NCBI RefSeq assembly: GCF_018977255.1 | Contig: NW_024704745.1 | Span: 24,738,001 to 24,802,000, forward strand | Origin: Callorhinchus milii | Taxonomy: Eukaryota | DNA length: 64,000 nucleotides | Direction of reading: 5' to 3' | Shown here: piece after piece, positions 15,134 to 43,359 of the stretch | Numbering within the stretch: the stretch's first letter is position 1 | Layout of the letters: the number at the start of each line of letters is the position of its first letter | Position numbers and translations under genes: made by a program | Notes under the pieces: generated by a model | Databases searched by the model: none | The model's input: only the letters and a program-made list of their open reading frames with translations | What the model was told of the DNA's origin: nothing

Positions 15134-15350
15134 AATGTATGGCAATGGTGATTGGAACAAGAAGCCACAACTATGAAGGAGGAATAGCAAGTGCCAAGGT
15201 CTGTAACTAACAGTAAACAGAGAATAATCCCCACAAAACTCCTACCCTTTGCAGATTATGCAACAGAACAATGGAAACTGATTAATAAAGTATACATCTT
15301 TTTGTTTTTAGTAAAACAGATTAAGATGTAAGAAAACAAGAAGCACTTAC

Positions 15351-15674
15351 CTTGTACATTAACAAGATATGAGTTTGTGATGCACAAATTGCCTGCTATC
15401 AATGTGCAGTTGTATGTTCCTGAATCAGAAAGCTGCACATTCTGTATCTGTAGACTGTAGAGTTCCTGAGGACTTCGTAAGAGCACAAACCTCTGGCTGT
15501 TATTCCATTTGTATGTCAGGTTGCGTACCACTTGATATGCAATAATAAGTTCACTTGTACTGTTGGTTATTTTGAACCAGCTCACTTGAGTTATGTTTAT
15601 CACTGAGGTGTTCCTACACTGAAGAGTTATTGTTTCTCCGACTGAAGTGTTAACAGATTCTCTGTCATCAGCAC
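15351..15674 (-). CDS. Gene 1 exon 2, IgV-set domain (CD200R-like)
   Basis: gtttccttcgcag|GT...CAAG|gtaagt, 324 nt, phase 1-1, open: ADDRESVNTSVGETITLQCRNTSVINITQVSWFK...SLQIQNVQLSDSGTYNCTLIAGNLCITNSYLVNVQ. Canonical B-strand Cys, C-strand Trp and D-x-G-x-Y-x-C. Confidence 0.95.
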
Positions 15675-17785
15675 CTGCGAAGGAAACTGTTTAACCAAAA
15701 ATGATTGTGATGTGAAGAAACCTGTGATAAACAAATTTACACTTTACTGCAAATTAGAAGCATGGTGTGAAAATTGTGATGCTTAATAAGTATCACATTG
15801 TATCTGTTAAGAAACAGCAATTTGTAATCTATTACAAAAGACAAGCTGCTGGTAAGAAAGCCTCTGGCCCCCAACCTTAGCATAGTTATGACATTTTTTA
15901 TCACTTAGACATCTATTTCGTGGAATTCCCTTCCGAATAAAAATATGATTGAAAGGGAAGACACTCTGAAATGACAGGTACTCTCTTTGACAATAGACTT
16001 AGTGTGAGCCCTGAGTTATTTGCAGTTAGCATGCAGGTGACAATGGGAATGTATTTGATATTTGGTTACAAGATGAGCTGATGTGCATTAGAAATAAACT
16101 ATTATTGGATCAACTGACCAATTGACCAAGCAACAATGTGTAAGCATGGTTAAACTGGTGACATTGGTAAGCCTCATTGTATAAACATTATGAATTACTG
16201 TAAAACTAAGAATCTATCTCATAAATGGTGCACATTCAGCAAACGTTTTACAAATGCCCATGGTCTAAATACATTCAAAATACAGCTTCATTAGCAATAG
16301 ATTTTCATGACCTGGGGGAATTGGTGAATATGAAAAGAAGAATCATACTCATCAAATTAAGTTGCATAATATTGGAACTTAGAATCACTTCTTGATTGGG
16401 ACATTTCATGAATGAGAAATGCCAGTATTGAAAAGCTCCAAATTTTCAAATAGCAAATTGTGAGCTTCACTAAAGGATTAAAAATGAACAAATCCTGCAC
16501 CTACTGGGTTGTTTTTCACAATGATTGAACCTGCTTGAGAGCTGATCTAATTTCTATCATCTGTGACAAAAAGGAGCGCCTAGTGACTGTTCAGAGATTA
16601 TCGTCCGGCTGGTCTGTACAATACACATCTAGATATGTGCAGGAGTTAATAGTTTAGAAAGCTTATGATTCCTGAAAAATTGATCCCAATATATATATAT
16701 TTTTTCAACAACTCCCTCCTAATATTTACACTGTATTCTTCTGGGTCAGACAGTATGTTTCATAATAATATACATCAATATAATAATTTCTGTTCATACT
16801 GATCATGGAAAACCTCATTGCAGTAGTTCTAAGGTGAAACATTTCCGTTTTTTTGTTTCTGTATTAGAGCTGATGAAGTGTGGAAGCATTTGAAAATATT
16901 TGATTTCTCCCCAAGAATCGATATCAATCAATTTATCCTTTTGAATTTTGAATTCACCTTGACTTTCATGGTGAGAATAATAGAAATTTAGAGTGCAGAA
17001 GGAGAGGCTGTTTAGCCCAACCAGTCTGCACCAGCTCTCAGAGCAAGTTGTTCTTTCCATCTCACTGATCTGTCCTAACCCTTCCAGATTTATCTTTTAT
17101 CTGTAATTAATTCTATTCTACGCCTTTTCTATCTCTTTTTAGTTCCTGAGCAGCATTGAAAATTTTAAACTCTGTCTTGGGACGTCCTCCCGACGTGAAA
17201 AGCGCTATACAAATGTAATTTTGTATTTTTTTGTACTGTATTATAACCAAGTCTAGTATTTACATAAATTTGTCTAACAAAGTAAATAGAGTCAAAACTG
17301 TTTTCAGGAACCACTCAGGGTGGCCATTATATAAGGGTGGCCTGTGGGTAAGGGTGCGTTGATTAGTTGGCTGGTTCTGAAATTATTAAAACATTTCCGT
17401 GGGTTAAAAATTTCTTTGGGCCCCACGTGTAGACTCTCGCTGGACTCCTAGCGCATTTACCAACACCTCCTCACCAGTGAGGTGGGAAGCTGTGGGCATC
17501 ATGTAGAGTGCTCAGCATAAGCCCCCGGAAATTGATAATGCATTAGTGGTAAGTACACTCAAATTCAGTTTCCCCTTGGGAGAGAGAAAAAAATAAGCGC
17601 AATCACCCAAATTAAAATTGAATTTAAGGCAGCTATCGAAAAATTGATAATTCTTTAATTTAAAGACTGTGATGTTACAAGTAAGAACATACAAACTACA
17701 CTTAAATTGGTTGCTTTAACAAGTTTGACTGTATATTAATTGAATCACTTTTAAAATATTAAGATTGTAAATATTTGAAATATAG

Positions 17786-18180
17786 TAACAACAACAACAA
17801 GATTACATTTGTATAGCGCCTTTCACGTCGGGAGGACATCCCAAGGCGCTGGACAGTTTACAGCATTTCAGACCCAAGCTGGGGTCAGGGGGGAAGAGGG
17901 GAGGGGAAGGGGGGTGGCCGATAGCATGGTCGAAGAGGAGGGTCTTGAGGCGGGACTTGAAGGCGGCTAAGGAGTGGGCGAGGCCATGGAGGGCTTTGTA
18001 GGTGAGGACCAGGATTTTGAACTGGATCCTCTGAAGGATAGGGAGCCAATGGAGTTGGGCGAGAATGGGGGAGATGGGGTCACGGAGTTTGGTGTGGGAG
18101 AGGACACGGGTTGCAGAGTTCTGGATTATCTGCAGCCTGTGGAGGGAGGAGTTGGGAAGGCCGACAATCAGGGCATTTGT
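17786..18180 (-). mobile_element. L2 3' fragment with internal deletion
   Basis: GLPNSSLHRLQIIQN...LHWLP motifs in ORF 17803-18243. Confidence 0.85.
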
Positions 18181-18719
18181 GTGTATAAACACTATATACA
18201 CACAATTATGAAATACATACTCAATTAACTGAAGTATACACATAAATAATCATTAAATACTTCAAAATGAAACAAATTAATATTTGGATCTATGTTAAGA
18301 TTAAAACATATCAATTTCAAATAAAAGTAATTTCTGAAATTAACTCAACACAATACTTCTTAGGTTAATTTAATTGTTGCTCCCATGGTATTCTGTAAAC
18401 TCTGCTGTTTGCTTTGTCTCAATACTTTAAGTCCCAAAAATGTCATACCGTTGTCCATCATTTGCCTTCTCTAAATGTTTAAACATTCTAAATTGTGCTT
18501 TAACCCATCAATACTTCATTAACTATCAGTTAATGAATCTTCCACTAACACCAGAATGCCTGTTATTGACATCTTATATGTTGCTATAAATATTAATAGT
18601 GTACTGTTCTTTTACCTCCATCCAAAACCTAATCAACATAGTATAACAGTGCTGTTTAATTACCAGTCCCATAATTATAATGTTTGCATAGAGCAGTTAA
18701 TCATGACAAAATATCTCAA

Positions 18720-19455
18720 AGCTCTTGAGCTGTCCTTTCTTCCCCACATCCGCGCCACAGCTGGCACTGCCTTCCACCACTTCCGAAACATCACCAGACT
18801 ACGGCACTACCTCACCCCTCACGCTGCTGAAACTCTGGTCCACGCCTTCATCATCTCAAGGCTGGACTACGGGAACTCTCTCCTCGTCGGCCTTCCCGGC
18901 ACCTCTCTCCACAAGCTGTAGGTCATTCAGAACTCTGCAGCTTGAGTACTGTCCCGCACCAGGCTTCGCGACCACATCACTCCCACCCTCGCTCGCCTCC
19001 ACTGGCTCCCCATCCCCCAGAGGATCGAATTCAAGATCCTCATCTTCATCTACAAGGCCATTCATAGCCTTGCACCCTCCTACCTCTCTGACCTACTATC
19101 CCCCCACGTACCTGCCTGTACCCTCTGTTCCTCTGGCTCCGGTCATCTCCACATCCCCCGCCCTACCATCGGTGGCTGGGCTTTCAGCCTCTTAGCCCCT
19201 AGGCTCTGGAACTCCATCCCCCAGTGCCTTCGCCTTACCTCCTCCCTTTCCTTCTTCAAGGCCGGTCTCAAGACCTTTCTCTTCAACCGTGCCTTCAGCT
19301 CCCCTCTCAACTCTCTACCACCTCCTCGGTTCCCTCCCTTCCCTCCCCTCACCCTGACCATTTTCCCCCTGCTCGGGTCCCCACCCAACTGTCCAGCGCC
19401 TTGGGACGTCTCCCGACGTGAAAGGTGCTCTATAAATTAAATCTTGTTGTTGTTA
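18720..19455 (+). mobile_element. L2 3' fragment, same subfamily as 1-1953
   Basis: Closely matches 1170-1950. Confidence 0.9.
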
Positions 19456-19732
19456 TTTACAGGATTTTACTTTAAACTGTAGTATTTGTATATCTGTAGG
19501 CGTTTTGCAGGCAATTTGACATAGCAATGTCCCACAAATGGCCGTGAAGTGAACGTCAGGACACAGAGAAACTCCCTTGTCTTTTCATAAAGTGTAATAT
19601 CCACCTCAACAGGGTTATTTGACCTTGGTTTAACATCTGAAAGACAGCACCTCTGACACTGCAGCTCTACCCACAGCACTGGCTTGAGTAACTGCCTGGT
19701 CTATGAGCTCAAAGACCCAGTGTGGGCAGTCA

Positions 19733-20185
19733 ACAACAACAACAACAACAACTTGGACTTGTATAGCGCCCTCCACGCTGGATGGCATCTCAGAGGGCTT
19801 CACAGTAACGGATCCCGGGTCCAAGCCAGAGGGATGGGGAGGAAGGTGACCAAAGGTGCTGTCGAAGAGAAAGGTCTTCAGGAGGGACCTGAAAATAGGA
19901 AGAGAGGATGCGAGGCGAAGGGAGTGAGGAAGGGAATTCCAGAGCCTCGGGGCATAGTGGCTGAAGGCAAAGCCGCCAAGGGTGGAACGGAGGACTTGGG
20001 GGACGAGGAGGAGGCCAGATCCGGAGGAACGAAGGCGACGGGTATTGGTTTGAGGAGAGAGGAGGTCAGAGAGGTAGGGCGTTGCAGAGGAGTGGAGGGA
20101 TTTGAGTACAAGAGTGAAGATCTTGAAGTCGATCCTCTCTGGAATAGGCAGTCAGTGCAGGCTGGCAAGGACTGGGGTGATCATT
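19733..20185 (-). mobile_element. L2 3' fragment
   Basis: Reversed (CAA)n tail and L2 3' motifs. Follows an old Deu-type SINE fragment (about 19480-19730). Confidence 0.75.
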
Positions 20186-21597
20186 GATTGGCGGGTTGTT
20201 TTCCAGGTGTAATAATCCCTTCAAAATCCAGGACTGTTCATGGGTCACTGTTTTACACAATTGGCTGCTGTGTTTTGTCCACAAAATATATAGTCCATTC
20301 ACTTCACAGTATATGGTGAGAAGTGCTTTGAGATGTCTCAATAATGTGATTAGGAGCTATATCAAATGCAAGAATAATTATATTATTATTATATAATGTT
20401 AATAAAATGCTATCAGACATTAAAGGATCTGATGAAAGTTTGTCAAAAGGTTAATGGGCAAGCGAAAAACATTCAATAAACCACAGAAGTGTTATCAAGA
20501 ACAGATTTCCAGTACAATTCAAATAGGCTGATACTCCATTTGTAGTCTTCTTGAGCGAGAAGGTGTTTAAATATTACATTTGAATTTTAAGACAAAAACA
20601 TTTACGACATTGTCAAGATGCTCAACGATCTTCACAGGATTCACTGTAAGGATTCTATTTATAGGCAAACACAGCAGTCAATTTGTGCATAGGAATGTCC
20701 CAAAAACAGCCATGAAGTGAGTGACCAATTTTATTTGGCGGGTTGTTGGCCAGGTCCCGGAGAAACTCTCTTTTCGAATAGTGCCATGGGATCAGTAATG
20801 TCCATTTGAACAGGCAGGCACAATCTCAGTTTAAGACCTCATTACAGCATTAGTTCACTATGGCTGCATGAGCTCTCGGATAAAACATTTTGAGTTGTCC
20901 AGATCTGGGAGTCCAACAGTTAAATGGTACATCATTAACATACATTATTAATTAGCTATTGAAGGGCAGTTGTTGTACGGGTTTACACAGCTCACATAGA
21001 AGACTTTATTTCCAATTACTGTGTAACTCTAATTGAAATAATTACCATTCAACAAAACTGAAAGTTTATGCATTTGGGATGAAGTTTAGTAGTCAAATAA
21101 GTGACCTTAAGATATTTAACACATTGACTGCTCCTCAAATGTTCTGGAGATGATCACCAAATCAGATACCTTTCTCAATAGTCACCACAGACAAGTCAAT
21201 TGCACCATATGCTGGATTTCTGCCTCACGCGTTACAGAATTGAACTGCTGCTTAGTGCGTTATTACTTTAACCAAATAAAAATTGGAGTAAAGCCAGAAG
21301 GACAATGGTTTAATTCATGAGCTTGCTTCTCTGCTGAGAGAGTTCTAAAGCTATCAGAAGTGGTGTCCGCCTTCAGCCTATGCAGTGAGCAATCAATGTG
21401 TTAAATGTCATATTGTCACTAAAGTTTAAATTAGCAGATTAATTAGTAGTTTAAATTAGCAGATTAACATATGTGTACATTTACCTGATTGCTACAGTGA
21501 TAGATCTGTTCAAATTGTCAGTTCCTCATGTTACTCATTTAACTGTTCTTCAATAATAATCATTACATTAACAAATAAGTGTTGGTATGCATTAATA

Positions 21598-22650
21598 ATA
21601 ATAATCCTTGCATTTAGTGTAGTGCATTATCATGTTGAAAGAATGTCTCAACCCACTTCGCAGGATTTACTGTGGAGTGAAGTGACTTTGTATTTGTAGG
21701 CAAACACGGCAATACAATTGCACACAGCAATGTTCCAGAAACAGCTTTGAAACAAATGACCAATTTTATTTGGGGGATTGTTGACCAGGACACTGGGAGA
21801 GAGAAACTCCCTTCTCTTTTTGAATAGTGAATCTTTAACATCCACCTGAAATGGCAGATGAGACCTCGGTTTAGCATCTCATCAAAGAGATGGCACCTCC
21901 AACAGTGCAACACACCACAGTACTGAATTGGAGTGTCAGCTTTGACTATGTCGTGATACTCGGCTTTATAAATAGGGGTAAAGAATACAAAAGTAAGGAG
22001 GTTATGATAAACCTTTATAAAACACTGGTTATACCTCAGCTAGAGGACTGTGTGCAGTTCTGGGCATCACACGTTAGGAAAGATGTCAAGGCCTTGGAGA
22101 GGGTGATAAGGAGATTTACCAAAATGGTACCAGGAATGAGAGACTTAATTTATCGGAAGACTAGAGAAGCTAGGATTATTCTCCTTGGAGCAGAGAAGGT
22201 TAAGAGAAGATTTAATAGAAGTGTTCAAAATTATGAGGGGATTCGATAGGGTGAATAAGGAGAAACTGTTTCTACTGGCGGGTGGGTCGGTTACCAGAAG
22301 ATACAGATTTAAAATAGTTGCCAAAAGAACCAGAGGGGAGGTGAGGAGAAATGTTTTCACACAGCTAGTTGTTCGGTTCTGGAATGCATTGCCTGAAAGG
22401 GTGATGGAAGCTGATTCATTAAACAACTTTCAAGACAGAAATAGATAGATATCTGGGGAGGACAGGTTTGCAGAGCTATGGGGAGAGAGCAAGGGGTGGG
22501 TGGGATTAATTTGGACAGCTCTTTCAAAGATGAACACGATGAGCCGAATGGTCTCCCTCTGTGCTGTATAATTCTATGATTCTATGTGAGTTGAAGTCCC
22601 TATGTGGGATTTGAACCCACAATCTTCTGACTCAGACGCAAGCTGACACA
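21598..22650 (-). mobile_element. Deu-domain-type SINE interrupted by a CR1
   Basis: Tail at 21598, Deu-like core acctcggtttagcatctcatc...ggcacctccaacagtgca, and head remnant gatttgaacccac after 22587. Confidence 0.7.
21953..22586 (+). mobile_element. CR1 3' fragment
   Basis: LYKTLVIPQLEDCVQFWASH...RLREDLIEVFKIMRG with a (ttctatga) tail. tatgt occurs at both junctions (possible TSD). Confidence 0.9.
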
Positions 22651-23386
22651 TAACAAAGAATTGCAGTATTGCAGATAACAGGGTTTAAACCTGCAGATTT
22701 TTGCAATAAATTTGTTACTATAACAGAATTCAGAAATAGGCAGTTTATTTGTAACAAGTTCGGAATGAAGTCCCTTTCTGCAGGCAGCACAAGCTGCGCT
22801 GGGTTGTTAATTTTACTTAGCTTTTTTTCCCAGTCAGTACGAGTCTCAAAGCATATCATCTTGCTGACATTTGTTACTTCAGTGGGTTGATAGCTGTTCT
22901 GAAAAGATAGTTATTTGATCTGAATGGGCCTGTTACATCAAAAGATGGATGAACACTTAGAGGACAGAAAACACAATTTCAGCAAGAGGCAAAGCGTCTC
23001 AACGAGCTTCACAAGATATATTGTAAAGTGGATTTGAATGTGTATTGATGAGATTTCAACATAATAAGGGCTGTATCAAATGCAAAGACTTTGGTGATTT
23101 TTAAAGATTATTATGCCACATTCACAAAAGTCTTAGTCAGAACATAATAAATGATGAGGAAGTGTATAGTCAATGAGGTAGTCAGCAGCATTTTAGATAT
23201 TTCTTAACAAACAGCACTTCTGCATTTATTGTTTTATATTTCTAATCAGTTTGCTAAAAGACACTTACGTGCTGAAATTACTTAGCTTCCAAGACTTAAA
23301 AATTTTCTCTTGAAATTTAAGATCACGTAGAATTACAGAAAATTCCTAAATTCAATTTTAATTTGCTGCTTACTTTTCCGCATTGT

Positions 23387-23597
23387 TAATAATAATCCTT
23401 CAAAAAACCAAAAACAATAATAATTTGGTCATTTTCAATCTACGACTGTTTGTGGGACATTGCTGTGTGCAAGTGGCTGCCGCGTTCTCCCACAAATATA
23501 CAGTCAATTCACTTTACAGTGTGTTTTGTGAAGCGCTTTGGGACGTCCTCCCGACGTGAAAAGCGCTAGATCAAATGCAAGGATTATTATTATTATT
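23387..23597 (+). mobile_element. 5'-truncated short SINE in gene 1 intron 1
   Basis: Body and (TTA)n tail. ttgttaa is repeated at both ends. Confidence 0.85.
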
Positions 23598-23959
23598 GTT
23601 AAAAAGAATTGACTTCCAAATTAAGAATAAATTGCAGAATTTCCTACAATTCTGCATGATTTTAAATTCTAACATGTAAAGACCACATTGAATTTCAGGC
23701 CTTTAAAGGCTAAAAGCAATTCAAAGAAACCTACTGATGAAATCAACTCCTGTGAAGTTCTACTAACCATATAACATTATAAAATAAGTTAATTGAATTG
23801 AAATTATTTTACAATCTTATGTTAATAAAAGAAGCCCAACAACTAGGGCAGTGAAATACTATTCTGCTGTTTAGATAAAACTGTCAACAACATAGCACAA
23901 TTCTCAGCAAGTTCCCTTCAATGAAAATAATTTTAAAAAACTGGTTTTCTGAGCTTTAC

Positions 23960-24029
23960 CTGAAATGATGAATAGAATCCAAACAATTTCAGTGTGGAGG
24001 GGTGATCTATAAGAGTTGCAACACTTCAT
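23960..24029 (-). CDS. Gene 1 (CD200R-like) exon 1, signal peptide MKCCNSYRSPLHTEIVWILFIISG
   Basis: ATG at 24029 and 70 nt (23 codons+1) ending TCAG|gtaaag. The phase-1 donor matches the phase-1 IgV exon. Hydrophobic IVWILFII core, a TATA-like box about 45 nt upstream, and an end similar to the gene 2 leader (ILIVISG). Confidence 0.75.
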
Positions 24030-24060
24030 TTTGTAGTAATAGATAACTCATCAAGTGCTG

Positions 24061-24131
24061 GCCCACATCTATTTTATAGCAGCGATCCAAATGTGGGCAG
24101 AGCATGCACCGTGTGGTTTCTCCTTCCTGTG
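24061..24131 (-). promoter_or_regulatory. Candidate core promoter of gene 1 (TATA, RUNX-type and ETS-type sites)
   Basis: TATAAAA (minus) 24078-24072, TGTGGTT 24112-24118 and TTCCTG/CAGGAA 24124-24129, all within about 100 nt of the ATG. Motif matches only. Confidence 0.45.
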
Positions 24132-24879: not shown

Positions 24880-25240
24880 ATAAATGACTCCATAGCCTTT
24901 CCCAACCCTATCTTGGTGATCTCCAGCAACTCTCCTCTCTTGGCCACTCCGTGCCTGCTCTTTTCTCCTTCATTTCCCCACCCACTCTGCCCCACCATCA
25001 ACAGATGAGCGATCAGCTAGTTTGTCCTCCACTCACTCTCTGGAACTCCTCTCTGAAATCTCATTGCCTTGTCTTTCACTCTCGATTTTCAAAACCAATC
25101 TAAGTACTTATCTGTCTGATGGTGTTTTCAGCTATCTACCCCTTCATCATCCTCCCAACTCGAGCTCCCACTCAGTCTTTGCAAAATAATTTGAGATATT
25201 CTCCTGATGTGAAAGGTGCTATATAACTGCAACTTGTACT
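24880..25240 (+). mobile_element. Old L2 3' fragment
   Basis: ctctggaactcc...tgatgtgaaaggtgctatataa end motif. Confidence 0.6.
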
Positions 25241-27483: not shown

Positions 27484-27785
27484 AAATAACCCTTGCATTT
27501 TGATATAGCGTTTTTAATGGCTTCTAGACATCTCAAAGCGCTTCACAGAATATACTGTGAAGTGAATTGACTGTATATTTGTGGGTGAAAAGTGGCAGCC
27601 AATTGCGCACAGCAGTGTCCCACAAACAGTCCTGACCAAATTATTATTGTTATTGATTTTTTCTTGAGAGATTATTATCAGGCATGTGGAGGAAGGAAAC
27701 TTGCCCAAGGTTTCACCCTGCTGGGAATCAAACCCAGTTGCTTGCTTTCAAGGCGAGTTCTCTAATCACTGAGCCACAGGGCACA
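27484..27785 (-). mobile_element. tRNA-derived SINE, short subfamily
   Basis: Reverse complement similar to 4357-4677. Confidence 0.8.
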
Positions 27786-27829
27786 TTTTTATTACTGCTC
27801 TTGGACTTAAATTCTTATACAAAGTGTGA

Positions 27830-30925: not shown

Positions 30926-32261
30926 ACAAGCTGATCAACAAGCTGATATCACTAATAGACATTTACAGTATTTTGTGTGAAATGCTTTAAGATGTCTTGA
31001 AGATGTGTTAAGGTTTTATATCAAATGCAAGGATAATTAATGTATAACGTTAAGTTGTGACCCACCAAGTGCAAAGTGTTATCTTAAATTTCCCTTTGCG
31101 CCCGATGAGTTTGACACCACAATGTCGCACTTGATATCTTATTTTACACAATGAAGTCACTTTTTACCAGTAATGTAACAGTTTGAGACTTCATCCTCAT
31201 TGAGTACATCCTGTGACAATTGGTTAATATCCACACCTTTTATCTTTCTTAATTAGCCGAATAAACATTTTTCTTTGACAGTAAACAGCAGTATTTGTTG
31301 TCCGGATTCAATATTTGCATATCCTGTTGTGAGTATGTGCTTTGGATCCCACCATATGTCTACTCATACAAATTAGTATCAGTCACCAATTAATCTGTCT
31401 TTTTTAAAGCTACATAGGCACAAATTCTTAAATACTTTGATCTTTGAGTAGGAAACCAACATTAAATTTAACATCTCTCCTCATAAAACCTTATAGAAAA
31501 ACAAGCCATAGACATTCGTAACTGTGAAAGTACTCTATTTCTGTGGCTGAAAATCGTTCACTGTAAGGTTTGGTCACAATGACACCCACTTCCAGTTCAG
31601 AGTAACCATATGCTAATATGATCAACTGCTAGATAATTGCATTCCTTCTTGTATACTTAAAGCAGGAAGTGACTTTAGAAGGGACCTTAAGACTTCAGAA
31701 TGTCCATTTTAGCTTCAAACTTCAATAGACCAATGTCTGGTTTATTAGTTCGGTAAAAATGTCATTTCCTGCTTTGTGAATGTGCAGAAAATTGTTCCTG
31801 ATGAACTGGAAATTGGACAATTTTTCTTTCAGCACAAAAGCAGTCATCCCACAGTGAGGAAGTCAGCTGACTGCGCACATGTGCATAACGCAGGATGGGA
31901 TTTTATGGATCACAATCACTGTGTTATAGAGACGCCACTGTTCTAAAGAGTTAGCCAGATAAGAAAACAACAGGAGCTGTAATATCAACAAATCACAATT
32001 AATAACATTGCCATAAAGTTTGTGGTAGTTTCTTAACTAATTTCCTTGTGTCAATTAGCACACAATGGGTTAAGAAATGGTGCCGATGCCTTCCAAATAT
32101 GTAATTGCCAGTGCCTTGTGCTTCTCCCGAACTTTATGAAAATATGGAAACACGGAGGTACAGTTGGGTGTCAGCATATTTATGGAAATAAACAACTTCC
32201 ATTGTATTCAGCGTCACATGAAGAGTCCTAACTTATATTCCTCATACCTCATTGCCTCTAT

Positions 32262-33800
32262 TAACAACAACAAAATTACATTTGTATAGCACCTTTCATG
32301 TTGGGAGGACGTCCCAAGGCGCTGGACAGTCAGAGTTTTGGACTCAAGCTGGGGGTTGGGATTGGGGAGGGTGGAGGGCAGGGGGTAGCAGGGTGATCAA
32401 AAGCACAGTTGAAGAGGAGGATCTTGAGATGGGTCTTGAAGGAGGCAAGGGAGTGGGCTAGGTGGAGGGACTGTGGGATGGAGTTCCAGTGGGTGGAGGC
32501 AGAGTGGCAGAAGGCCCGCCCACCAATAGTGGGGCGAGCGAGGAAGGGGAGGTGAAGCAGGCCGAAACCCGCTGAGCGGAGGAAGTAGGCAGGATGATAG
32601 GGGGTTAGGAGATCGTAGAGGTAGGGGGAGCAAGGCCATGGAGGGCTTTGAATGTGAGGACCAGGATCTTGAACTGTATCCTTTGTGTGATGGGAAGTCA
32701 GTGGAGTCGGACGAAGATGGAGGTGATAGTGTCACGGAACCTGGTGCAGAAGACATGGGCTGCAGAGTTCTGGATGATCTGCAGCCTATGGAGGGAGGAG
32801 TTGGGGAAGCCGACAAGCAAGGAGTTTACATATGTGTATGTATGCAAGCTTTGGCGGCCTGCGGTGTGAGACAATGCCGGAGCCGGGCAATGTTGTGGAG
32901 GTTGGGGAAGGCAGAGCAGGTTGTGGCACAGATGTGGAGTAGAAAGGATAGTTGAGGGTCAAACAAGATATCAAGGTTTCGGACTGTTTTAGTAAGATGG
33001 AGTGTGCAACCACGGATGGTGATGCTGTCAGCGCCTGAGGTGTGGAGGTGCTGACAGGAGCCAATCATGAGAGCCTCGGTCTTGTTGACATTCAACTGAG
33101 AAAACTAGCTCTCATCCAGGACTTGATGTCCGACAGACATTCTGTCAGGACAGCAGAGGACCTGGAGTCACGGGTGAAGGCAGAAAGGTACAGTTGGGTG
33201 CCATCCGCACAATACGGTTGATGTCACTAAGAGGGAGCATATAGATATTGAAGAGGAGGGGACCAAGGACAGAGCCCTGATGAACACCGCACAAGATGGT
33301 ACAGGAACTAGAGGAGAAACCGTTTGTGGATATGAAGTGTAGGTGGTGTGAGAGATACGATCTGAACCAGTCAAAGACAGAGCCATGAAGGTTGAGGTGC
33401 GAGGAGAGGCTGTGGATGAGGATAGAGTAGTCGACGATATCAAAGGCAGCAGAGAGTTCAAGGAGGATGAGGAGGCAGAGGGAGCCCTGGTGTCAGATGG
33501 ACAGAATGTCATTTGTCACTTTGACCAGGGCTGTTTCTGTGCAGTGGGCGGCACAGAAACCCGATTGGAGGGGTTCATGAAGGGAGTGGCAGGAGAGGAA
33601 GGAGTGAAGCTGGGAAGCAACAAATCATTCCAGGACTTTGGAGAGGAAAAGGAGGTTGGAGACGTGTCAGTAATTTGAGAGTAGGGATGGGTCCAGGGAG
33701 GGTTTTTTAAGGATAGGAGGCCGTTTTTAATGGGGTGGGAACAGTACCAGTGGACAGGGAGAGGTTTATAATGTCTGTGAGTAGAGGGGCAAGGAAATAG
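32262..33800 (-). mobile_element. L2, RT to 3' tail
   Basis: Continuous similarity to 1959-2715 and 25790-26610. Confidence 0.9.
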
Positions 33801-34155
33801 AGCAGGTATCAGCTCTATGTTTTCCTCTTTAATGTCTCTATTACTTAGTTAAACATGTTCATATATGTCAATGGTCATTTAATATGATTATTCTCCAGTT
33901 ATCCGCAATTAAGTAATCAGTTGTTCAGTACATTATCTGTGATAATGACACTTGCAGTTACTGTATTGTTGAGTTCCCCATACAGAACTCTGTCCTCCCG
34001 TAATGTGTCACACAACACCCTGAAAGCAATCAGCACAAAGTTATTTCTTTATTCATTATTGCAGACAATCCGATTTGTGTCAAACAGGAATACAGATTGG
34101 TTTTAAACGTAACACATACAGAAGGAAACAAACAATCAGATTACAGACTCCACAA

Positions 34156-34477
34156 AAATAATAATAATAAAAATCCTTGCATTTGATATAGCGCTTTTCA
34201 CGTCGGGAGGATGTCCCAAAGCGCTTCACAGAACACACTGTAAAGTGAATTGACTGTATATTTGTGGGCGAACGCGGCAGCCAATTGTGCACAGCAATGT
34301 CCCACAAACAGTCGTAGATTGAAAATTACCAATTTATTATTGTTTTGGGTTTTGGAGGGATTATTATTAGGCGTGTGGAGTAAGGTAACTTGCCCAAGGT
34401 TTCGCCCTGCCTGGAATTGAACTCAGGTCTCTCGCTTGCAAAGCGAGTGCTCTACCCACTGAGCTACAGGTCTCACT
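34156..34477 (-). mobile_element. tRNA-derived SINE, short young subfamily
   Basis: Nearly identical to 6559-6888 and 41214-41540. Confidence 0.9.
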
Positions 34478-34955
34478 AGTTACATAATATAGTTTTGAAT
34501 CACATTCCCTCTCTGTAACACAGATTGAGAATTTTTACAGCATTTATAACGAAAACAACTCAACAGGTGGGTGAACACTTTTGCTCTAATCTATAAAGTT
34601 ACTTATATAATACTTTTGCTTCGTTTTTGATTAGCATGTAGCCAGCAGATTTATGACTTTAACCACATAATTTTTATTCCTCTGTATTTTATGTACACTG
34701 TATTATAGGGTAATTAAAATTGATATATATTGAACAAATTTGTTTGTAGACATTCTTCTTGTACTCAGTATTTGGCATTATTAAATAATTGATTGAATTA
34801 ACATAATTTTATATCATACAATTAATTAAAATATACAGTCTAATTCAATAACAGTCAGTACAGACTGTGTGAAACTTTCTTTCACCTACTTTATAACACA
34901 TTTCTCTAAAGGAGAATATCCTTAAATGAATGGAACTTTGCTTCACAGACATTAC

Positions 34956-35014
34956 CTCAAATAATGAATAAATTACAATGGACACAGCATGAAAGGGCAA
35001 TTTAATAGAGACAT
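34956..35014 (-). pseudogene. Disabled paralogous leader exon
   Basis: AAGATG...TTATTTGAG|gtaatg aligns with the gene 2 leader. It is 59 nt (out of phase), has an in-frame TAA, and has TGA where TCA is expected. Flanks 34760-35110 resemble 46100-46470. Confidence 0.65.
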
Positions 35015-36419
35015 CTTCTTTGTGCTGAAAGTGCTCATGAAATAATGTCTCACGTCCCTTTAAATGATTCTTATGTGATGATGGTTTTCAGTTCCTTGAT
35101 ACACACCTCGTGAAACAGTTAATTTTCTCGTAGCAGGTAAAATACTGTTAGAGAGGTATTTTCTGGTGTCCATGGCTGCAGTGAGAGTGAGGCCTTGATC
35201 TTTCCTTTGCTTCAGGAGCTGCAGAGCAGTGGCAAGCAGGCAGTCAGGGCTCTGGTGTTGTACAACCCACAAGATTGCAAGATTTGTCTGCATAAAGAAA
35301 TCTCTTTGGCCCATCCAATCTCTTTGCTCCAGAACATCCACCCTACCATCCCCCCATCACAGCAACAAGCTGCTTTTTAAATGAGTCCAGTGTTTCAACC
35401 ACACTTGACAAACTGTTTCAGTCATTAAAAAAAATTACTTCCTGGTATCTGTCCTGAGACTGTCCTGTGCAATTCTAAACTCGTGTCCTCTTGACTTGTT
35501 GTATCCTGTATTGATTTGCATTTACTTTTTCAATCCCATTTATAATGTTGTACACATCTATAAGATTCCCCATGGTGTCATGTCTGCAAATTGGTTGCTG
35601 AGTGTAGCTAAAAAATATAGTCACTGCTCCAGTAAATTGCGTCTTGAGGTGTTCTCCTGACACGAAACACACTATATGAAATGTTATAATGTATTAAAAT
35701 ATTATTATATTTTTTAATGAATGGTGGGATCTAAAATGTTAAGAAAAAGAACTGAATAGTGGGAAAGGAGAACATCAGTTTCTAAGATTATTACAGAAGT
35801 AGACGATGCACTGTCTAGAATTTCATTCCTAAAATGGTCAACTTTAAGATTATCAGTTTGCTGCTTTGCAAGTGCACAGGAAATGTGAAGTGAACTTTGT
35901 ATTTCAGGAAACCCACGAGCCAAATACATACATGGAGTCAAACCTGCATGCCTTGCTGTAGCACAGGTTGGTACCTATCTTAACCTAGCCTCGGCAGAAG
36001 CCGTTCCTGTGCAAACCGCTCAGGGCGCACCCAAAACTATGACTAAAATAACCATGAGAGTAACCATATAACTGTATGGCAGGATGCTCTAAATGTAAAC
36101 AAAGAGCGTCTTGAAAACGTATGCATGGTAAACATGTGCACCTACGTTGCACATCGGGGCGTCTGCTGAAAGCAGCAAATGCACCTTATCAGCGTGTGCG
36201 CGGGGGCGCAAATGGATGTGGTGCACACTGCGGTGACTCCCGATTGGTTTAAAGGGAGCATCCCAAAAAAAACACGGGTGCACGACATGTGTGGTGGAGG
36301 AATGTAACGTAAAGAGCGGAATGTTTTCATATTGGGAGCAAAGGGAAAAGCCTAACAGTTGTACGTTGTGTTTTTAGTTTGAGATTTCTGTCCGTCGCAA
36401 ATATTACATTTAAGAAACA

Positions 36420-36920
36420 AGTGGGTTGGTGCTTAACTTAGCGCATTGGGTTTGGCACTGCTGCCAGTGTGTGGTCAGGGTGGGAACGGCTCTGGTTGGG
36501 GTCAGGCCCCATCTGTCCATTGCACATAGTCCCTGATGGCAGAGTGCGAGCCTGCAGCGGGCCCTCTCTGACATGGTGCTGCTGTGCGGGTACACCAACT
36601 GGTTTCGGATGATCACAAGGGCCACCTTCACTGACCTGATGATCCTCGAGGTGCACTCGATGTCGGTCTCGCTATGTGTCCCCCCCCAGGAAGAGGCCAT
36701 GACAGTGGATCCCCGTGGACGAACTGCGAGAGCAGCCCATCCATCTATTTCAAAACGGCCTTTGCGTCCGTACAGTCCAGGAGCAGGTGCTCCGCTGTCT
36801 CCTTGTCTCCACAGCTATCCCGAGGGCAACCGGTGGTGGCAGCGAGGCTCTGGCGGTGCAAGAGGGTCCTGATGCAGAGCGCTTACCTCACCTGGCGGAT
36901 GAGACACCATGATCATGAAG
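36420..36920 (-). mobile_element. Tx1-clade (L1 group) LINE, ORF2 C-terminal fragment
   Basis: Translation ALCIRTLLHRQSL...GCPRDSCGDKETAEHLLLDC (zinc-knuckle-like), then GTHSETDIECTSRIIRSVKVAL. Contains stops and frameshifts. Confidence 0.75.
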
Positions 36921-36923
36921 GTG

Positions 36924-36970
36924 CTCGGCCTTTTGGCGAAGATTACATGTAATCTCTGTTCTTAACAGTT
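36924..36970 (+). pseudogene. RNU2: U2 snRNA 5' fragment (about nt 8-54)
   Basis: ctcggccttttggcgaagattacatgtaatctctgttcttaacagtt matches vertebrate U2 (from memory) at 40/47 positions without gaps. Truncated at both ends. Confidence 0.85.
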
Positions 36971-38194
36971 ACTGGAACACTCATCTCCTGCTGAGATTTC
37001 CGAATTTCACCCATAACTGAACGAATTATGAGAAGGATTGAACTCTCCGCTGTAGCCATGGTTTCAGCCCTCTGTTGGCTGGAATCGGTACTGCGGCATT
37101 CCTGATCTCAGGAGTTCGATCTGCTCTCACACAGAGGAAGCAGAGGATACCTGAACTCGGAGCTACCTTCAGCACTTGGTCACCAGGTTCAGGCCGGGCT
37201 TGCCCTGCCGGAATGGCTCGGGTGCTCGTGAAGACAGGTATCAGATGCACATGGTCCTTTGATAATTTGGGGCCAAGAAAAGTTTGTGGGGGATTAGGAT
37301 TTGTCTGTGGAGATAGCCCTCATTCCCAAAGTGGAACGTTTTGGTCTAGTTTGGTTAATGGGGGTGAGCATGTCTAACCTCGCTCATCAATAAAAGAAAG
37401 TGGGTTGGTATTTTATGGATCTCAAATGCAACGTTAGGGCAGAGCTTCACTGTATTTCCTGGTGTCTATAATGAAATTACCGCTTTGTGACCATGAAACT
37501 GCTTCATTGTATTGGAAAATATTGTGTTTACTTTCTCAATCGTATTTAGAATTTTATGTATCTCTATAAGCTTCTCTCAAAGATATTTCATTTCAAGGGT
37601 GAAGAGGCTTAGCTTATCTGGCTCATCAGCAGGACTTAGAGGGGCAGATTGGATCAATGGGGGCAAGGATTCTTTCCTCTCAGTGCCTGTTAACCCGTAA
37701 ACTCTTATGGATGGGGTGGTCCTAGCTGGATATGAAGCGGGAAACATTTCCAGACAATGCTTTCATAGAAAGTTATATGGTTTTAGCTGGTTTAACATCA
37801 GCAGTGTCCCAATGTACATTCTTCTCAAGCTTTGGCTCTTGCCAACCTGTGCCTTATACTCTATTAGGTAAGCAGGGTGAGTACCTCCAGAGTATGCATC
37901 CCATTTCAATATATGAGAATTTCCTTGTAAAGGTGGGATGCAATGCAACTCTATTTGGTTTGGGTTTCCATAACATGATAATCATTTAATATTTGCAGTT
38001 GAAAGTGATTAACTGAAGTGATAATTGTTAATCAATTCTATTTTGAAGTTATTCCAATGTTAGGCCCACAACTTGAATATGATATTAAACACCAGTGTTT
38101 TGACTTTAAAGCACATTTATAAAATCAAATAAAATCTGTTTAAATAAAAATATCAGAGTTTTTTTAACTGTATGTTTGTTGTTGTTGTGATCCA

Positions 38195-39165
38195 AAAGTA
38201 TGACACAAACAGAACAAGAGTGAAAGTCCAAGCTGGTACACATGTGTATCCTCTGTTGGTCCAGATTCAGCTTCCTGCAGCTGAATATGGACAAGACGGA
38301 AGCCATACTTCTTGGTTCCTGACAGCGTCTTCACTCCTGCGGATCTAAGCTCCTCAACCAACCTGGGCCCTCCCTCACACTCGCCGAACCAGTGCGCAAC
38401 CTAGGCATCTGGTTCGACCCCCAACTGTCCTTCTTCCCCCATATCCGGTTCCTGACCAGGACCGCTTTCTTCCACCTCCGCCACATTGCCCGCCTCCGAC
38501 TGTACTTTACCCCAAATGCAACTGAAACCCTCGTGCGTGCGTGCGTTTGTCACCTCCCACTTGGATTATTCCAACGCACTTCTCACCGGTCTCCCCAATT
38601 CCATCATTCACAAAATCCTGCTCATTCAAAACTCTACCGCCCGCATACTGACCGGACCTCCTGCTTTTCCCTCGCACCCTCCGCCCCACCATCGGAGGTT
38701 GTGCTTTCAGCCACTAAACCCCCAAACTCTGGAACACTCTCCCTCAATCCCTCCGCCTTGCCCCCTCTCTCCCCTCTTCAATCCCACTTGAAATCTTTCC
38801 TGTTCGACCGTGCTTACGGCCACCTCCCCCCTCCCCCCAGCTCAGAGTCAGGCTCCACCACTGTTAAGCGCTCTGAGACGCTACCCTGCGTCTCGGAGGG
38901 CGCTATATAAGTGCAAGTTGTTGTGTTGTCTGGAATTCCATCCCACGGTCCCTTTGCATTGCTTCCTCCCTTGCCTCCTTCAAGGTCGGTCTCAAGACCT
39001 TTCTCTTCAACTGTGCTTTCGGTCTCCCTCCCACCCCTCTGCCTTCCCTCACCCCTACACCACCCCTTCCCCATGCTCGGGCCCCTACACCTGACTGTTC
39101 AGCGCTTTGGGACGTCTTCCTGACGTGAAAGGCGCTCTATAAATGTAATTTTGTTGTTGTTGTTA
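38195..39165 (+). mobile_element. Two adjacent L2 3' fragments
   Basis: RNLGIWFDPQLSFFPHI ORF, with two successive 3' tails near 38925 and 39165. Confidence 0.85.
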
Positions 39166-39364
39166 TTGTGGAGCACTCATCTGAATGTCTGTTCTCCTCT
39201 CGGTTCCTGATTTTTGGAAAAAGTAAAAAAATGCGGCTGAGATTTATCACAGTACATGGAGTGAAACACACATGCATGATTTACTGTCTGCTTGTCTTGT
39301 TATGTAACAATAAGCAGCCTAGCTCCACAAGTAATACAGGTGGCAAATAGAGAGTAAGTCAGGT

Positions 39365-39860
39365 CAGACCCCCACATCAGGTCCCTAACCAAGACCGCTT
39401 TCCTCCACCTCTGATCTGTATCTCACCCCCAACACAGCCAAAACCTTCGTGCCACCTCATCAGCTGCCACCTCAAATATTCCTATGCCCTCAAACTGGTC
39501 TTCAGGATCCTCTCAATTGTCTACAAATGCCTTCATGCCCTGGCACTTCCCTACCATTCTGACCAGCTTTCTCCCCATTCCACTACTCGCTGCCTCTAGC
39601 CTCCTGCTAGTCCCTCGGCCCCTCTGCTCCACCATCGGCAGCTGTGCTTTAAGCCACTATGCCCCAAAGGTTTGGAAATTTCTTCCCCAATCCCTCCGCC
39701 TTGCCTCTCTCCCTCTTTTAGATCCTTCCTCTTCGGACGTGCTTATGATCATTTCCTCCCGCTCCCTGGCTCTGCATCAGGCTCTGCCATCGTTAAGTGC
39801 TCCAAATCGCTGCCCCTCATGAAGGACACTATTATAAATGCAAGTTGTTGCTGTTGTCTG
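39365..39860 (+). mobile_element. L2 3' fragment with deletions
   Basis: ccaccatcggcagctgtgctttaagccactatgcccc and an L2 3' tail. Confidence 0.7.
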
Positions 39861-40240
39861 AATCAGCGGTATGTCATTTATATATAAAACGTGAGAATAT
39901 TTATTCTACCAAAGACAATAATGGCAATTCCCAGTTTACAAATCCAAAATGGAATAATAACTCCAACTGAGTGCAGGTGGAGATCTGCAGGTCTGGTTGT
40001 GAAACATTAAGACACAAAAGGCAGATTGAGAAGTGATCCCCTCCCCACTCACCAGGGGACTGAAGCAGAAAATATCACAGGCTCCTCGATCCATATTGTG
40101 TATTTAAATGAGTCATTATGATTAAAGTGGAAACTATATCTTTTGCTAATCTACGACATATATAAAATAATTCAAGAGTCAGTTCTGTAGCCCGGAGCTT
40201 TGAAGTAACCACTATTTTAAGCGAGACATTCATAACTGAA

Positions 40241-40413
40241 CTATTCCACGTACTGTATTTCAAATAGTTTAGTCTCATTACATAAATTAAGCTGACCATA
40301 AGTTTTACCACACTGCTTTCTGTTCAGGTACAAAGCCCACATAGCTACAATTGTCGTGATTCCTATTGTGATTCCAATGAGATGAAGAATCATCTGTAAA
40401 AATCTTTGTGAAT
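40241..40413 (-). CDS. Gene 2 exon 3, TM (D)SQRFLQMILHLIGITIGITTIVAMWALYLNRKQC plus short tail (3' end uncertain)
   Basis: ctctgtatcttcgtgcag|AT acceptor, phase 1, in frame with the IgV exon. Hydrophobic stretch followed by RK. Either splices at G|gtaaaa (40309) or reads through to a stop at 40241 (186 aa total). Confidence 0.7.
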
Positions 40414-41193
40414 CTGCACGAAGATACAGAGTGTAATGAATACCACACAACAGTAATCCAACTGTCAGACCCTGGTTTATAACACGGGATGGTGGATGGG
40501 GGAAAGCTGAACCTCTCAATTTAAAACTCAATTGCTCAGAGCATCTTATTGAAGTATAGAAAGTCACAATATAGAAGAAAGCCATTTGGCCCATCGTGTT
40601 TCTGCTGGCTTTTAAGAGCAACCATTTCAGTCCCATCTATCTGACTTTTAACTGTACCCCTGTAGTTTTCTCCTTTTAGGTACTTATTTAATTTCCTGGA
40701 ACCTTAGATCATTGTCACAATATTTTAAAATTGAAAAATAGTCAATCCACTGTGTGCGTGTGAAATTAAGTCATCTTAATTTCTATTGACTGAAATTATT
40801 TGGTGATATTTCACAGCGTAAACCAGGCAAGAAAGCCAGATCATTGTATTCCTGGAGTTTTTCCATCATCAATGATCACCATTAATTTGACAAAATTTAC
40901 GCTTTGTGGATTAAGCAACACAGCAGTGAAATGATTCAAAAAGTGTGCATGTATTTGTGTTTTTAGTAAAAGTTTAAGATAGAGAGCAGGAAGTATCTAC
41001 TTGGGCATACAATAACATGGTGCCAGTTAGAGGTATCATATTCAAGAATTATTATTTTTGTTATTGGATTATGAACTAATACTCAATGTTCCATTTCTCT
41101 CCTGTTCTGCACAAGGTTATTGTCTTTATTTGCTAGTTCCTTGTCTACTTTTGATTACATTTTTATTAAATTTGATTAAATTTAGGGCATGAA

Positions 41194-41540
41194 GGAGTCC
41201 TGTAGCTCAGTGTGGAGTCCTGTAGCTCAGTGGTTAGCGCACTCGCTTTGCAAGTGAGAGACCTGAGTTCAATTCCAGGCAGGGCGAAACCTTGGGCAAG
41301 TTTCCTTACTCCACACGCCTAATAATAATCCCTCCAAAAACCAAAAACAATAATAAAATTGGTCATTTTCAATCTACAACTGTTTGTGGGACATTGCTGT
41401 GCGCAATTGGCTGCTGCGTTCGCCCACAAATATACAGTCAATTCACTTTACAGTGTGTTCTGTGAAGCGCTTTGGGACGTCCTCCCGATGTGAAAAGGGC
41501 TTATCAAATGTAAGAATTATTATTATATTATTATTATTAA
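41194..41540 (+). mobile_element. Short SINE with duplicated 5' 20 nt
   Basis: ggagtcctgtagctcagtg at both 41194 and 41214. Confidence 0.9.
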
Positions 41541-41784
41541 TTTGTATGCGAGAGTGAGGACATTGAGTTGATCCATTTGAAGACAGGAAGCGAGTGGGGC
41601 CTGGTAAGATGGGGTGGGGGTTTCTTGCAGGTGAAGATATGGGTGTCACAGTATTATATTAGCTGAACCTTGTGGAACAAGGCAGAACAGCGAATAGTGC
41701 AAAACCATTATGCAGATAAAAAAAAGTATTGCAGATGGATTTCATGTATATAAAAGTAAGAAAATGTACTTTGCAACAAGATAG

Positions 41785-41835
41785 ACACACACACACACAC
41801 ACACACATACATACATACCTACATACATACATACA
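41785..41835. repeat. (CA)n/(TACA)n microsatellite
   Basis: Direct inspection. Confidence 0.9.
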
Positions 41836-41974
41836 AACGGGAAGTGGAGAATAACATGAAATCATTGCCAAATATTGTGACAGAAAAATCACGACAGTGT
41901 TCCTGCGTTTTGCAGATAAAAACAACATATTTTAGAAAAACAATTTAAAAAGTTAGAAAACAAGAAGCACTTAC

Positions 41975-42298
41975 CTTGTACATTAACAAGATATGAGTTT
42001 GTGATGCACAAATTGGGTGCTATCAATGTGCACTTGTATGTTCCTGAATCAGAAAGCTGCACATTCTGTATCTGTAGACTGTAGAGTTCCTGAGGACTTC
42101 GTAAGAGCACAAACCTCTGGCTGTTATTCCATTTGTATGTCAGGTTGCGTACCACTTGATATGCAATAATAGTTTCACTTGTACTGTTGGTTATTTTGAA
42201 CCAGTTCACTTGAGTTACGTTTATCACTGAGGTGTTCCTACACTGAAGAGTTATTGTTTCTCCGACTGAAGTGTTAACAGATTCTCTGTCATCAGCAC
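41975..42298 (-). CDS. Gene 2 exon 2, IgV-set domain nearly identical to gene 1
   Basis: 324 nt, phase 1-1, ag/gt flanks, open frame. 7 nucleotide differences from 15351-15674. Confidence 0.95.
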
Positions 42299-43359
42299 CT
42301 GTGAAGGAAACTGTTTAACCAGAAAATGATTGTGATGTGACGAAAGTTGTTAATATTTGTTCTTTCTAGCTCATAATAGCCAGAGACCTGCTGCCCTGCA
42401 ATCCCAAAGCGGAGAGAAAGTGGGGTAGATTTGTTTACAGTTTATACCCCCAAGCTCTGCTCCCTCTCTTGATTAAACTGCAACATCCTCATCTCTTAGT
42501 CAGTTAACGTATTGCTGGATAGTCTGCAACAGGGAATTTTGCGCATTACACAACATGTTAGTAAGGGCTTTTGTGACCCCAGAAATAGACCAGTAGCTAC
42601 ATAGGCTACATGTCCAGCAAATGTTTTTCTAATTATCGTACACAATCGTTAAATAGAATATGGACAACACATTGACATTAATTCAAAATAGGCTGCTGGA
42701 AGGAAGCAGAGGATAGTTGTTAGAGCAGCTAAGTCAAAATGAAGGGAAGTATTAAAATGAAATATTATCTTAATTGAGTTCCAACATTTATGTGTCAGTG
42801 TCATTTTCTACAATTCTGCACCTAACGTCAATGTGTTACATCTGATTAACACTGTAATATTGTTTTATGTGCCAGCAGCAAATATACAGTCACCTCATTC
42901 TCAATTGTTCCACCCATCAACATAAAAATGTATTATTTCAAGTGATGCACAAATTTCAAGCATGTAAAGTGATTATAACAAAATAATCTTCAAGCCAAAA
43001 ACAACGACATAAAGTACTGTAAAAGTAGAACTCATGATCCACAGAGCGCTTGATCTGCTACTTGATCTGCTCCTGGAGGTGTCCCAGCTGTAGGGGAACA
43101 ACCAGTCCCAGACTTTGTGCAACTGGTTTCACACAAAACTGGTCACTGCAGCCATGAGCTGACAAGTAGCATTTCTGAGCATTTCCATGCTGGATCAATG
43201 AACCCTGATTTAAGTCAATTTTATAAGTTATCAACTGTGACATCTACACAAACATAATATATCACACTACATTCTGCATTTTATCACCTAAAAAATTGAT
43301 TAAAAGCCTCAGTTTGTGGAAGGCTTGCAAGAACCTCATCAAAAAAACGATTTTCATTG

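Follow-up and report, generated by a model that had tools for sequence, protein, structure and literature searches.

Two genes of the elephant shark, Callorhinchus milii, carry IgV exons that are almost identical, although the rest of the two genes has diverged almost beyond alignment. The genes lie in a stretch of 64,000 nucleotides (nt) of RefSeq assembly GCF_018977255.1 (contig NW_024704745.1, positions 24,738,001 to 24,802,000 of the forward strand), hereafter the window, from whose first letter all positions are counted. They are tandem paralogues in the same orientation, and each encodes a type I membrane protein with one IgV domain. A first-pass annotation of this DNA had proposed exon-limited gene conversion between old paralogues, and we conclude that exon-limited, non-allelic conversion is well supported and probably the correct explanation. 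The two exons, and the tracts of near-identity in which they are embedded, are as follows.

15351 to 15674, minus strand: gene 1 exon 2, IgV, 324 nt (Pfam V-set E 8.6e-16; family hidden Markov model (HMM) score 151)
41975 to 42298, minus strand: gene 2 exon 2, IgV, 324 nt, matching gene 1 exon 2 at 317/324 positions (Pfam, family HMM)
15330 to 15720, minus strand: tract attributed to conversion in gene 1, comprising the exon with 20-21 nt of intron 2 on one side and 46 nt of intron 1 on the other; identity is raised out to 15306-15725 at most
41954 to 42345, minus strand: the corresponding tract in gene 2, from the same alignments

Both exons are entered and left in phase 1 at canonical AG/GT borders (...ttcg/cacagGT and AAGgtaagt, with exon letters in capitals), and the translation of either is a 107-residue V-set domain (Pfam PF07686, E about 1e-15). 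The counts given in the first-pass annotation proved exact on realignment: the exons are identical at 317 of 324 nt (97.8%), and the seven differences fall in five codons, ATA/GTA (I27V), AGC/AAC (S31N), CTT/ACT (L42T), AAC/AAG (N88K), and GGC/CCC (G94P), written gene 1 before gene 2. None of the seven is synonymous, so that 0 of 70.5 synonymous sites differ, and the proportion of nonsynonymous differences (pN) is 2.8%. Gene 1 counts eight N-glycosylation sequons against seven for gene 2, where N88K destroys an N-C-T sequon. Both domains also have a third cysteine at residue 97 (NLCITN, at the start of strand G), which is not found in the shark relatives and has no obvious partner residue; it could form an intermolecular disulfide.

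The near-identity ends shortly beyond the exon. A direct-repeat search with gapped alignment returned a single specific repeat pair, 15306-15720 and 41930-42345, at a spacing of 26,624 bp, and a blastn comparison of the window with itself gave the same two intervals (96% over 416 nt) as the sole collinear non-repeat match between the genes. Searches of the whole window by blastn (word sizes 11 and 7) and by tblastx found no further collinear similarity linking the two gene regions; what remained was multi-copy short and long interspersed elements (SINEs and LINEs), plus a relic described below. Nor did tblastx of the window reveal any further coding segment common to both genes. In the upstream intron, the sequence adjoining the exon (15675-15720) is identical at 44 of 46 positions with a 1-nt indel, and beyond it the alignment is gap-ridden and at chance level. 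On the downstream side, the first 21 nt (15350-15330) match at 20 positions and the next 24 nt at 19, followed by a 37-nt gap, a stretch with 26 matches in 36 (15256-15221), and then nothing. The first-pass annotation had placed the limits of similarity at about 20 nt downstream and 45 nt upstream; these borders stand (20 and 46 nt), with the qualification that a residual homology of ~70% runs ~130 nt into the downstream intron. This residual homology beside the tract places it within old paralogous sequence. The intronic part of the tract itself holds three differences in 66-67 positions.

The leader and transmembrane (TM) exons, with which the IgV exons are to be compared, are located at:

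23960 to 24029, minus strand: exon 1 of gene 1, with the start codon and the signal peptide MKCCNSYRSPLHTEIVWILFIIS, donor CAGgtaaag, phase 1 (ATG/donor scan; leaders of shark proteins P0004 and P0005 as tblastn queries)
13314 to 13401, minus strand: gene 1 exon 3, transmembrane DQMRIILLYILSPIAIIVITVIIIIIIWK, phase 1 in and phase 2 out (hydrophobicity scan and sequence; the IgV-TM junction is also present in database model P0155)
46293 to 46356, minus strand: gene 2 exon 1, MLFSDKLFFHSAIIHILIVIS, donor CAGgtaaag (ATG/donor scan and tblastn; nt identity with the leader of gene 1, 60%)
40241 to 40413, minus strand: gene 2 TM exon, DSQRFLQMILHLIGITIGITTIVAMWALYL, with an open reading frame (ORF) continuing via NRKQCGKTYGQLNLCNETKLFEIQYVE to a stop (hydrophobicity scan and sequence; possible donor at 40309)

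The two leader exons are identical at 60% of their nucleotides, which represents real homology (z 5.7), and the two TM exons at 48%, the level of shuffled sequence (z 0.9). Together with SINEs that are unlike and in opposite orientation, these values bear out the earlier statement that the leaders, TM segments and intron repeats of the two genes differ. Given leaders at 60%, adjoining intron at ~70% and TM exons that cannot be aligned, the duplication must be old. The first-pass annotation had named introns aligning at a similarly high identity as the mark of a whole-gene duplication; they do not, and the diverged flanks exclude a recent one. Purifying selection might instead have kept the exon identical since the old duplication, given that it codes for a folded domain under constraint. 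However, 70.5 synonymous sites and 66 intronic bases cannot have been kept almost unchanged by constraint on a protein while leader and TM sequences fell to 60% or less, and we give selection of this kind, acting alone, practically no credence.

A short stretch of very high identity is also a possible product of local mis-assembly, in which one exon was placed twice or two haplotypes were mis-joined. Against this, the copies differ at seven exon and three flanking sites, their flanks are unrelated, and the window is free of N runs. In addition, C. milii protein models from earlier annotation, namely UniProt A0A4W3IWP7 (P0001), UniProt A0A4W3J617 (P0154), and a metaclust sequence (P0155), join each copy to its own flank, and their non-IgV parts map at 100% to the window (16177-16130, 14802-14725, 42552-42517, and 11107-10967). 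Independent annotation thus contains both exon copies, in their separate flanks, which is a strong argument against an artefact, and we consider one highly improbable.

The same models bear on variation within gene 1. The older gene 1 models (P0154 and P0155) have M79 in place of the V of the window's IgV exon, and P94 in place of G. Gene 2 likewise has P94, which lies two adjacent base changes away from G94. The G/P difference is thus not fixed between the paralogues, and is either polymorphic or specific to an assembly. An allele that matches the paralogue is as expected under ongoing conversion; a new double mutation on the haplotype of the window is another possible origin. Set against these two residue differences in the gene 1 IgV exon, the 139 flanking translated residues are identical to the earlier annotation, and the exon seems to be more polymorphic than its surroundings.

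Intron 2 of gene 2 contains the decayed remains of yet another copy, and each intron 2 has received a SINE:

40886 to 41030, minus strand: relic of the end of a third IgV exon and the start of its intron, in gene 2 intron 2 (blastn E 6e-12; three-way alignment; z 10.6 against shuffles)
14771 to 15133, minus strand: tRNA-derived SINE in gene 1 intron 2 (multi-copy by blastn; Rfam tRNA match at 15059-15130, minus strand)
41204 to 41540, plus strand: tRNA-derived SINE in gene 2 intron 2 (multi-copy by blastn; Rfam tRNA match at 41216-41287, plus strand)

The opposite orientations of the two SINEs indicate independent insertions. The relic, ~960 bp downstream of the gene 2 exon and with a SINE immediately upstream of it, shows 68-72% identity to a segment of gene 1 (15231-15370) in which the final ~20 nt of the IgV exon are followed by the opening ~120 nt of intron 2. 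The relic reads ..SNWHHVIV.., comparable to KWHLVI in the G strand of the shark proteins; its exon body is undetectable, and the family HMM gives no protein-level IgV signal there. It follows that the locus once held at least three copies of the exon region. The relic also raises the possibility that gene 2 acquired its exon by insertion, with a piece of ~0.4-0.55 kb carrying the gene 1 IgV exon entering intron 1 of gene 2 and replacing that gene's own IgV exon, which then decayed. The relic is as similar to gene 1 as would be expected of an old paralogue, and it stands just downstream of a SINE that occupies the expected place of the older exon body. A recent insertion, however, predicts uniform identity of ~98% with abrupt ends, whereas the flank of the gene 2 exon keeps ~70% homology past the core (the 26 of 36 matches after the 37-nt gap), and a gradient of this kind is in keeping with an old copy whose central part was recently converted. 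We therefore regard acquisition by insertion as unlikely. With its core at ~98% and its shoulders at ~70%, the tract sits within sequence of old paralogous origin, the arrangement to be expected of a non-allelic conversion of ~390 bp.

Outside the tract, the two genes appear to be built differently. Gene 1 has two further exons:

11631 to 11667, minus strand: predicted exon 4 of gene 1, length 37 nt, (M)KQTKPTNRVHTQ, entered in phase 2 and left in phase 0 (AG/GT borders and phases as in exon 4 of Chiloscyllium locus L001)
11025 to 11108, minus strand: gene 1 exon 5, ESGASAIQQQASVYLERINSVYDILSN*, with a conserved C-terminal tyrosine motif (best match to the shark-tail HMM)

The assignment of exon 4 is a prediction from borders and phases, and its similarity in sequence is weak. 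In the six-frame translation of the whole window, the top match to a profile of shark C-termini is 11034-11075 (SVYLERINSVYDIL), and the frame of the conserved gene 1 C-terminus, ASVYLERINSVYDILSN*, can be reached only through the 37-nt exon 4. The resulting five-exon model has 200 amino acids, is collinear with Heptranchias protein P0151 (43% identity over 211 amino acids, E 4e-45), and shares its exon structure and intron phases with Chiloscyllium locus L001. The predicted tail contains SVYLER and SVYDIL and has no YxN; by motif matching, SVYDIL fits the consensus of the immunoreceptor tyrosine-based inhibitory motif (ITIM). A read-through tail for gene 1 of the type seen in P0155 (MNQVHLLYNN...) was considered and rejected, as the conserved motif lies in another frame and requires exon 4. 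The public C. milii models P0154 and P0155 both contain intron read-through, and one of them has the wrong frame for the gene 1 tail.

In gene 2, collinearity with the shark family and its exon structure hold for the leader and IgV exons only. No counterpart of gene 1 exons 4 and 5 was found in the 25-40.3 kb region, and the six-frame window gave no match to the tail HMM for this gene. The TM segment of gene 2 is devoid of K and R, and no ITAM (activation motif of the immunoreceptor tyrosine-based type) was seen in the gene. Motif scans, the family HMM run on the six-frame translation, and lists of ORFs between the IgV and TM exons yielded neither a second Ig (C2) exon nor additional IgV exons for either gene.

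These data can be assembled into the following history. An old duplication produced two genes whose IgV exons now lie 26.6 kb apart. A recent interlocus conversion would then have copied ~390 bp between them, comprising the whole IgV exon with 20 nt and 46 nt of adjoining intron, and would have left the signal peptide, membrane anchor and tail of each gene distinct. The outcome would be a pair of receptors with a common ligand-binding module on two signalling chassis, gene 1 with an ITIM-like tail and gene 2 without that exon. Conversion may have recurred, and the members of the pair may signal differently. Several points weigh against this history. The comparison involves two sequences from one genome, which fixes neither the direction of conversion nor the number of events. 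The relic shows that the past of the locus is more complex than a single clean conversion. Gene 2, with no charged TM residue, is not an activating partner of the classical DAP12 type. Finally, the tail of gene 2 is ORF read-through only, and both gene models are predictions from genomic sequence.

The five codons that distinguish the exons were placed on an AlphaFold model of the IgV domain obtained from a 32-sequence alignment (predicted local distance difference test score (pLDDT) 92.7; a run with eight sequences, at pLDDT 62, was set aside). Strands C, C', F, and G of this model span residues 27-36, 39-47, 85-93, and 96-106, respectively, so that strand C carries residues 27 and 31, C' residue 42, and F residue 88, with residue 94 in the FG turn. 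Side-chain orientation was derived from strand parity and hairpin register; judged from the W32-I43 register of the C-C' hairpin and from C89 in the core, residues 27, 31, 42, and 88 would point off the core on the GFCC' sheet. The earlier claim that four changes lie on the GFCC' face holds and extends to the fifth site, the outward parity being that suggested by the model.

Such a distribution raises the question whether, after conversion, positive (diversifying) selection acted on the ligand-binding face and gave the receptors different specificities, the first-pass annotation having suggested a shift in ligand specificity. All seven differences are nonsynonymous, and all five codons fall on C, C', F, or the FG turn of the model; the chance of five out of five on a face with 21-34% of the residues is 0.0004-0.005, in a rough, post hoc estimate. 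In two of the five codons, neighbouring bases have both changed (P 0.006 under independent hits), and N88K removes an N-x-T sequon. On the other hand, dN/dS is indistinguishable from neutrality: as the first-pass annotation had cautioned, the absence of synonymous changes is non-significant, with P 0.18 if the seven changes are independent and 0.29 if they represent five events. The pN of 2.8% does not exceed the divergence of the tract's intronic part (3/67), G94P is not fixed, the orientation of the side chains comes from strand parity, and the differences are equally explicable as old sites that escaped a patchy conversion. The adjacent double changes point to multinucleotide events, to old differences left by patchy conversion, or to selection. 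The five differences on the C/C'/F/FG face, among them the loss of the N-C-T sequon in gene 2, may alter ligand binding; adaptive divergence of the face is plausible but unproven, and we hold it as a tentative proposal.

With respect to family, the honest label for both genes is that of an uncharacterised chondrichthyan family of single-IgV receptors, distantly CD226/nectin-like. In an exhaustive search of 1.84 billion representatives, the close matches were unnamed shark proteins with 55-59% identity in the IgV domain, followed by proteins of bichir and sturgeon. The family members are LOC proteins of Cetorhinus, Heptranchias, Rhincodon, Chiloscyllium, and Heterodontus, and the relatives from sharks are 205-218 amino acids long with a single V-set domain. 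Names were looked up for ten matches of this search; among them, CD226 (P0127) was the single mammalian protein with a name, and a profile search of a 5.8-billion-protein set added no named relatives. CD226 was also the best solved relative by sequence in the PDB (E 1.1e-8 by phmmer with a single sequence, 2.7e-12 with the family profile), ahead of neurotrimin, JAML, the SIRPs, and CD96. BLASTP against Ursus CD226 gave E 6e-10, with ~31% identity to CD226 D1 and a common TQ(V/M)xW(F/L)KI stretch. The signature motifs of the PVR family are (V/I)(S/T)Q, AX6G, and T(F/Y)P. One of these three is present here, as ITQ/VTQ; A-YQVVRN-L stands at the place of AX6G, and no T(F/Y)P follows Y-x-C. No tandem paralogue was found near Chiloscyllium locus L001 within the sequence fetched.

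The first-pass annotation had read the GFCC' face as that of CD200-CD200R binding, and this identity does not hold. The IgV exon is spliced straight to the TM exon, and no ORF capable of encoding a C2 domain lies between them, where the minus-strand ORFs of at least 80 amino acids are solely SINE- or microsatellite-derived. Without an IgC2 exon, the label CD200R is not supported. Although CD200R structures are in the library, no CD200R chain was among the 60 best PDB sequence matches, of which CD226 was the top one. CD200R signals through a cytoplasmic NPxY in its inhibitory form, or through a TM lysine that pairs with DAP12 in its activating forms; neither an NPxY in the predicted tails nor a DAP12-type lysine in the TM segments was found in either gene. 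A Foldseek search with the AlphaFold model ranked CD166 first, nectin-1 second, and CD226 third, followed by nectin-3, CD200R, JAML, CD200RLa, and CAR. Mouse CD200R was at rank 6 (query-normalised TM-score (TMq) 0.74, root-mean-square deviation 4.4), with CD166, nectin-1 and nectin-3, CD226, JAML, and CAR equal or better, so that this comparison of a predicted fold cannot discriminate among CD166, nectin, CD226, and CD200R.

Apart from the two receptor genes and the ORFs of repeats, the window is gene-poor. Eight Rfam tRNA matches (4362-4433, 6820-6875, 15059-15130, 27713-27783, 34402-34473, 41216-41287, 44134-44205, and 58146-58217) are the heads of tRNA-derived SINEs, which are ~330 bp long with mutual identities of up to 95%. 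Intron 2 of gene 2 also has a perfect 20-bp tandem duplication at the edge of its SINE (41194-41232), and an (ACAT)n microsatellite at 41785-41835, ~140 nt downstream of the IgV exon. Fragments with long ORFs of the LINE/reverse-transcriptase type occur at 1-2700, 32260-33850, and 62130-64000 and are repeated in the window at 73-85% identity. Between the genes there is a GC-rich patch at 36300-37300, reaching 60% GC against a background of ~40%, with ORFs of 100-130 codons on both strands; the ORFs of this patch (36.4-37.4 kb) matched no Pfam family above the cut-off, and the patch may represent a CpG island or some element.

Homogenisation confined to the exon of a ligand-binding domain is a signature of immune receptor pairs pressed by pathogens or by fast-evolving ligands. 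A clean case in the slowly evolving genome of the elephant shark would extend the phenomenon to the base of the jawed vertebrates, and would mark the CD226-like single-IgV family as a likely immune regulator. The corrected model of gene 1 further reveals a conserved ITIM-like C-terminus at loci where the public protein models are wrong. One may go further and suppose that these are holocephalan paired receptors, one ITIM-bearing and the other tail-less or signalling otherwise, in which recurrent conversion keeps the ligand-binding domain in step while selection separates four to five residues of C, C', F, and FG, a glycan site included. We consider this larger scheme rather doubtful; if true, the evolution of decoy or opposing receptors, and the conversion that sustains it, would already have been at work, within an IgV lineage related to CD226, among the earliest-branching of the living jawed vertebrates. 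In the literature searched, we found no report of exon-limited homogenisation in cartilaginous fish, the examples being mammalian or amphibian, and nothing on an elephant shark CD200R or CD226.

Among receptors related by fold or sequence, CD226 (DNAM-1), of the nectin/PVR-binding receptors that also include TIGIT and CD96, differs from the elephant shark proteins in having two IgV domains rather than one, and in a tail with YxN where YLERINSVYDIL is found here. TIGIT is a single-IgV receptor whose tail combines an immunoglobulin tail tyrosine (ITT)-like YxN with an ITIM. CD200R and CD200RLa resemble our pair in the concept of paired receptors, in the IgV fold (Foldseek ranks 6, 14, and 27; TM-scores 0.71-0.82), and in heavy N-glycosylation, to which the sequons here correspond. 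In CD200R, however, a C2 domain comes after the V domain (Hatherley et al., 2013, PMC3664923), and neither gene here has a C2 exon.

The closest parallels concern the process. In CEACAM1/CEACAM3 and species-specific pairs of that family, homogenisation has been attributed to gene conversion (Kammerer & Zimmermann, 2010, PMC2832619), and pairs are also described from Xenopus (PMC5112662). As in the genes studied here, the TM and cytoplasmic exons of CEACAM1-type pairs differ and one partner carries inhibitory motifs, ITIM together with the immunoreceptor tyrosine-based switch motif there, and only an ITIM-like motif here. CEACAMs nevertheless belong to another IgV family, their partners have ITAM-like motifs where gene 2 has no activating feature, and their pairs keep long homologous introns, whereas our genes are almost unalignable outside the exon. 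For such partial homogenisation, the term merohomogenization was introduced with the KLRC, KLRI, KLRB, Ly49, and PIR receptors (Fossum et al., 2011, PMC3210942), and Siglec-11/16 (PMC5701461) and CD300A/C are further cases. The elephant shark genes have the corresponding attributes: they are linked paralogues, with an exon at 97.8% against a leader at 60% and a TM exon at 48%, and borders 20 and 46 nt into the introns. The KLRC-type and Siglec systems are mammalian, mostly C-type lectin or multi-Ig proteins, with opposite signalling proven and ligands known, while our pair is known from its genes alone. With these differences, the exon-homogenised pair of the elephant shark matches the pattern of the CEACAM, KLRC, and Siglec-11/16 paired receptors.

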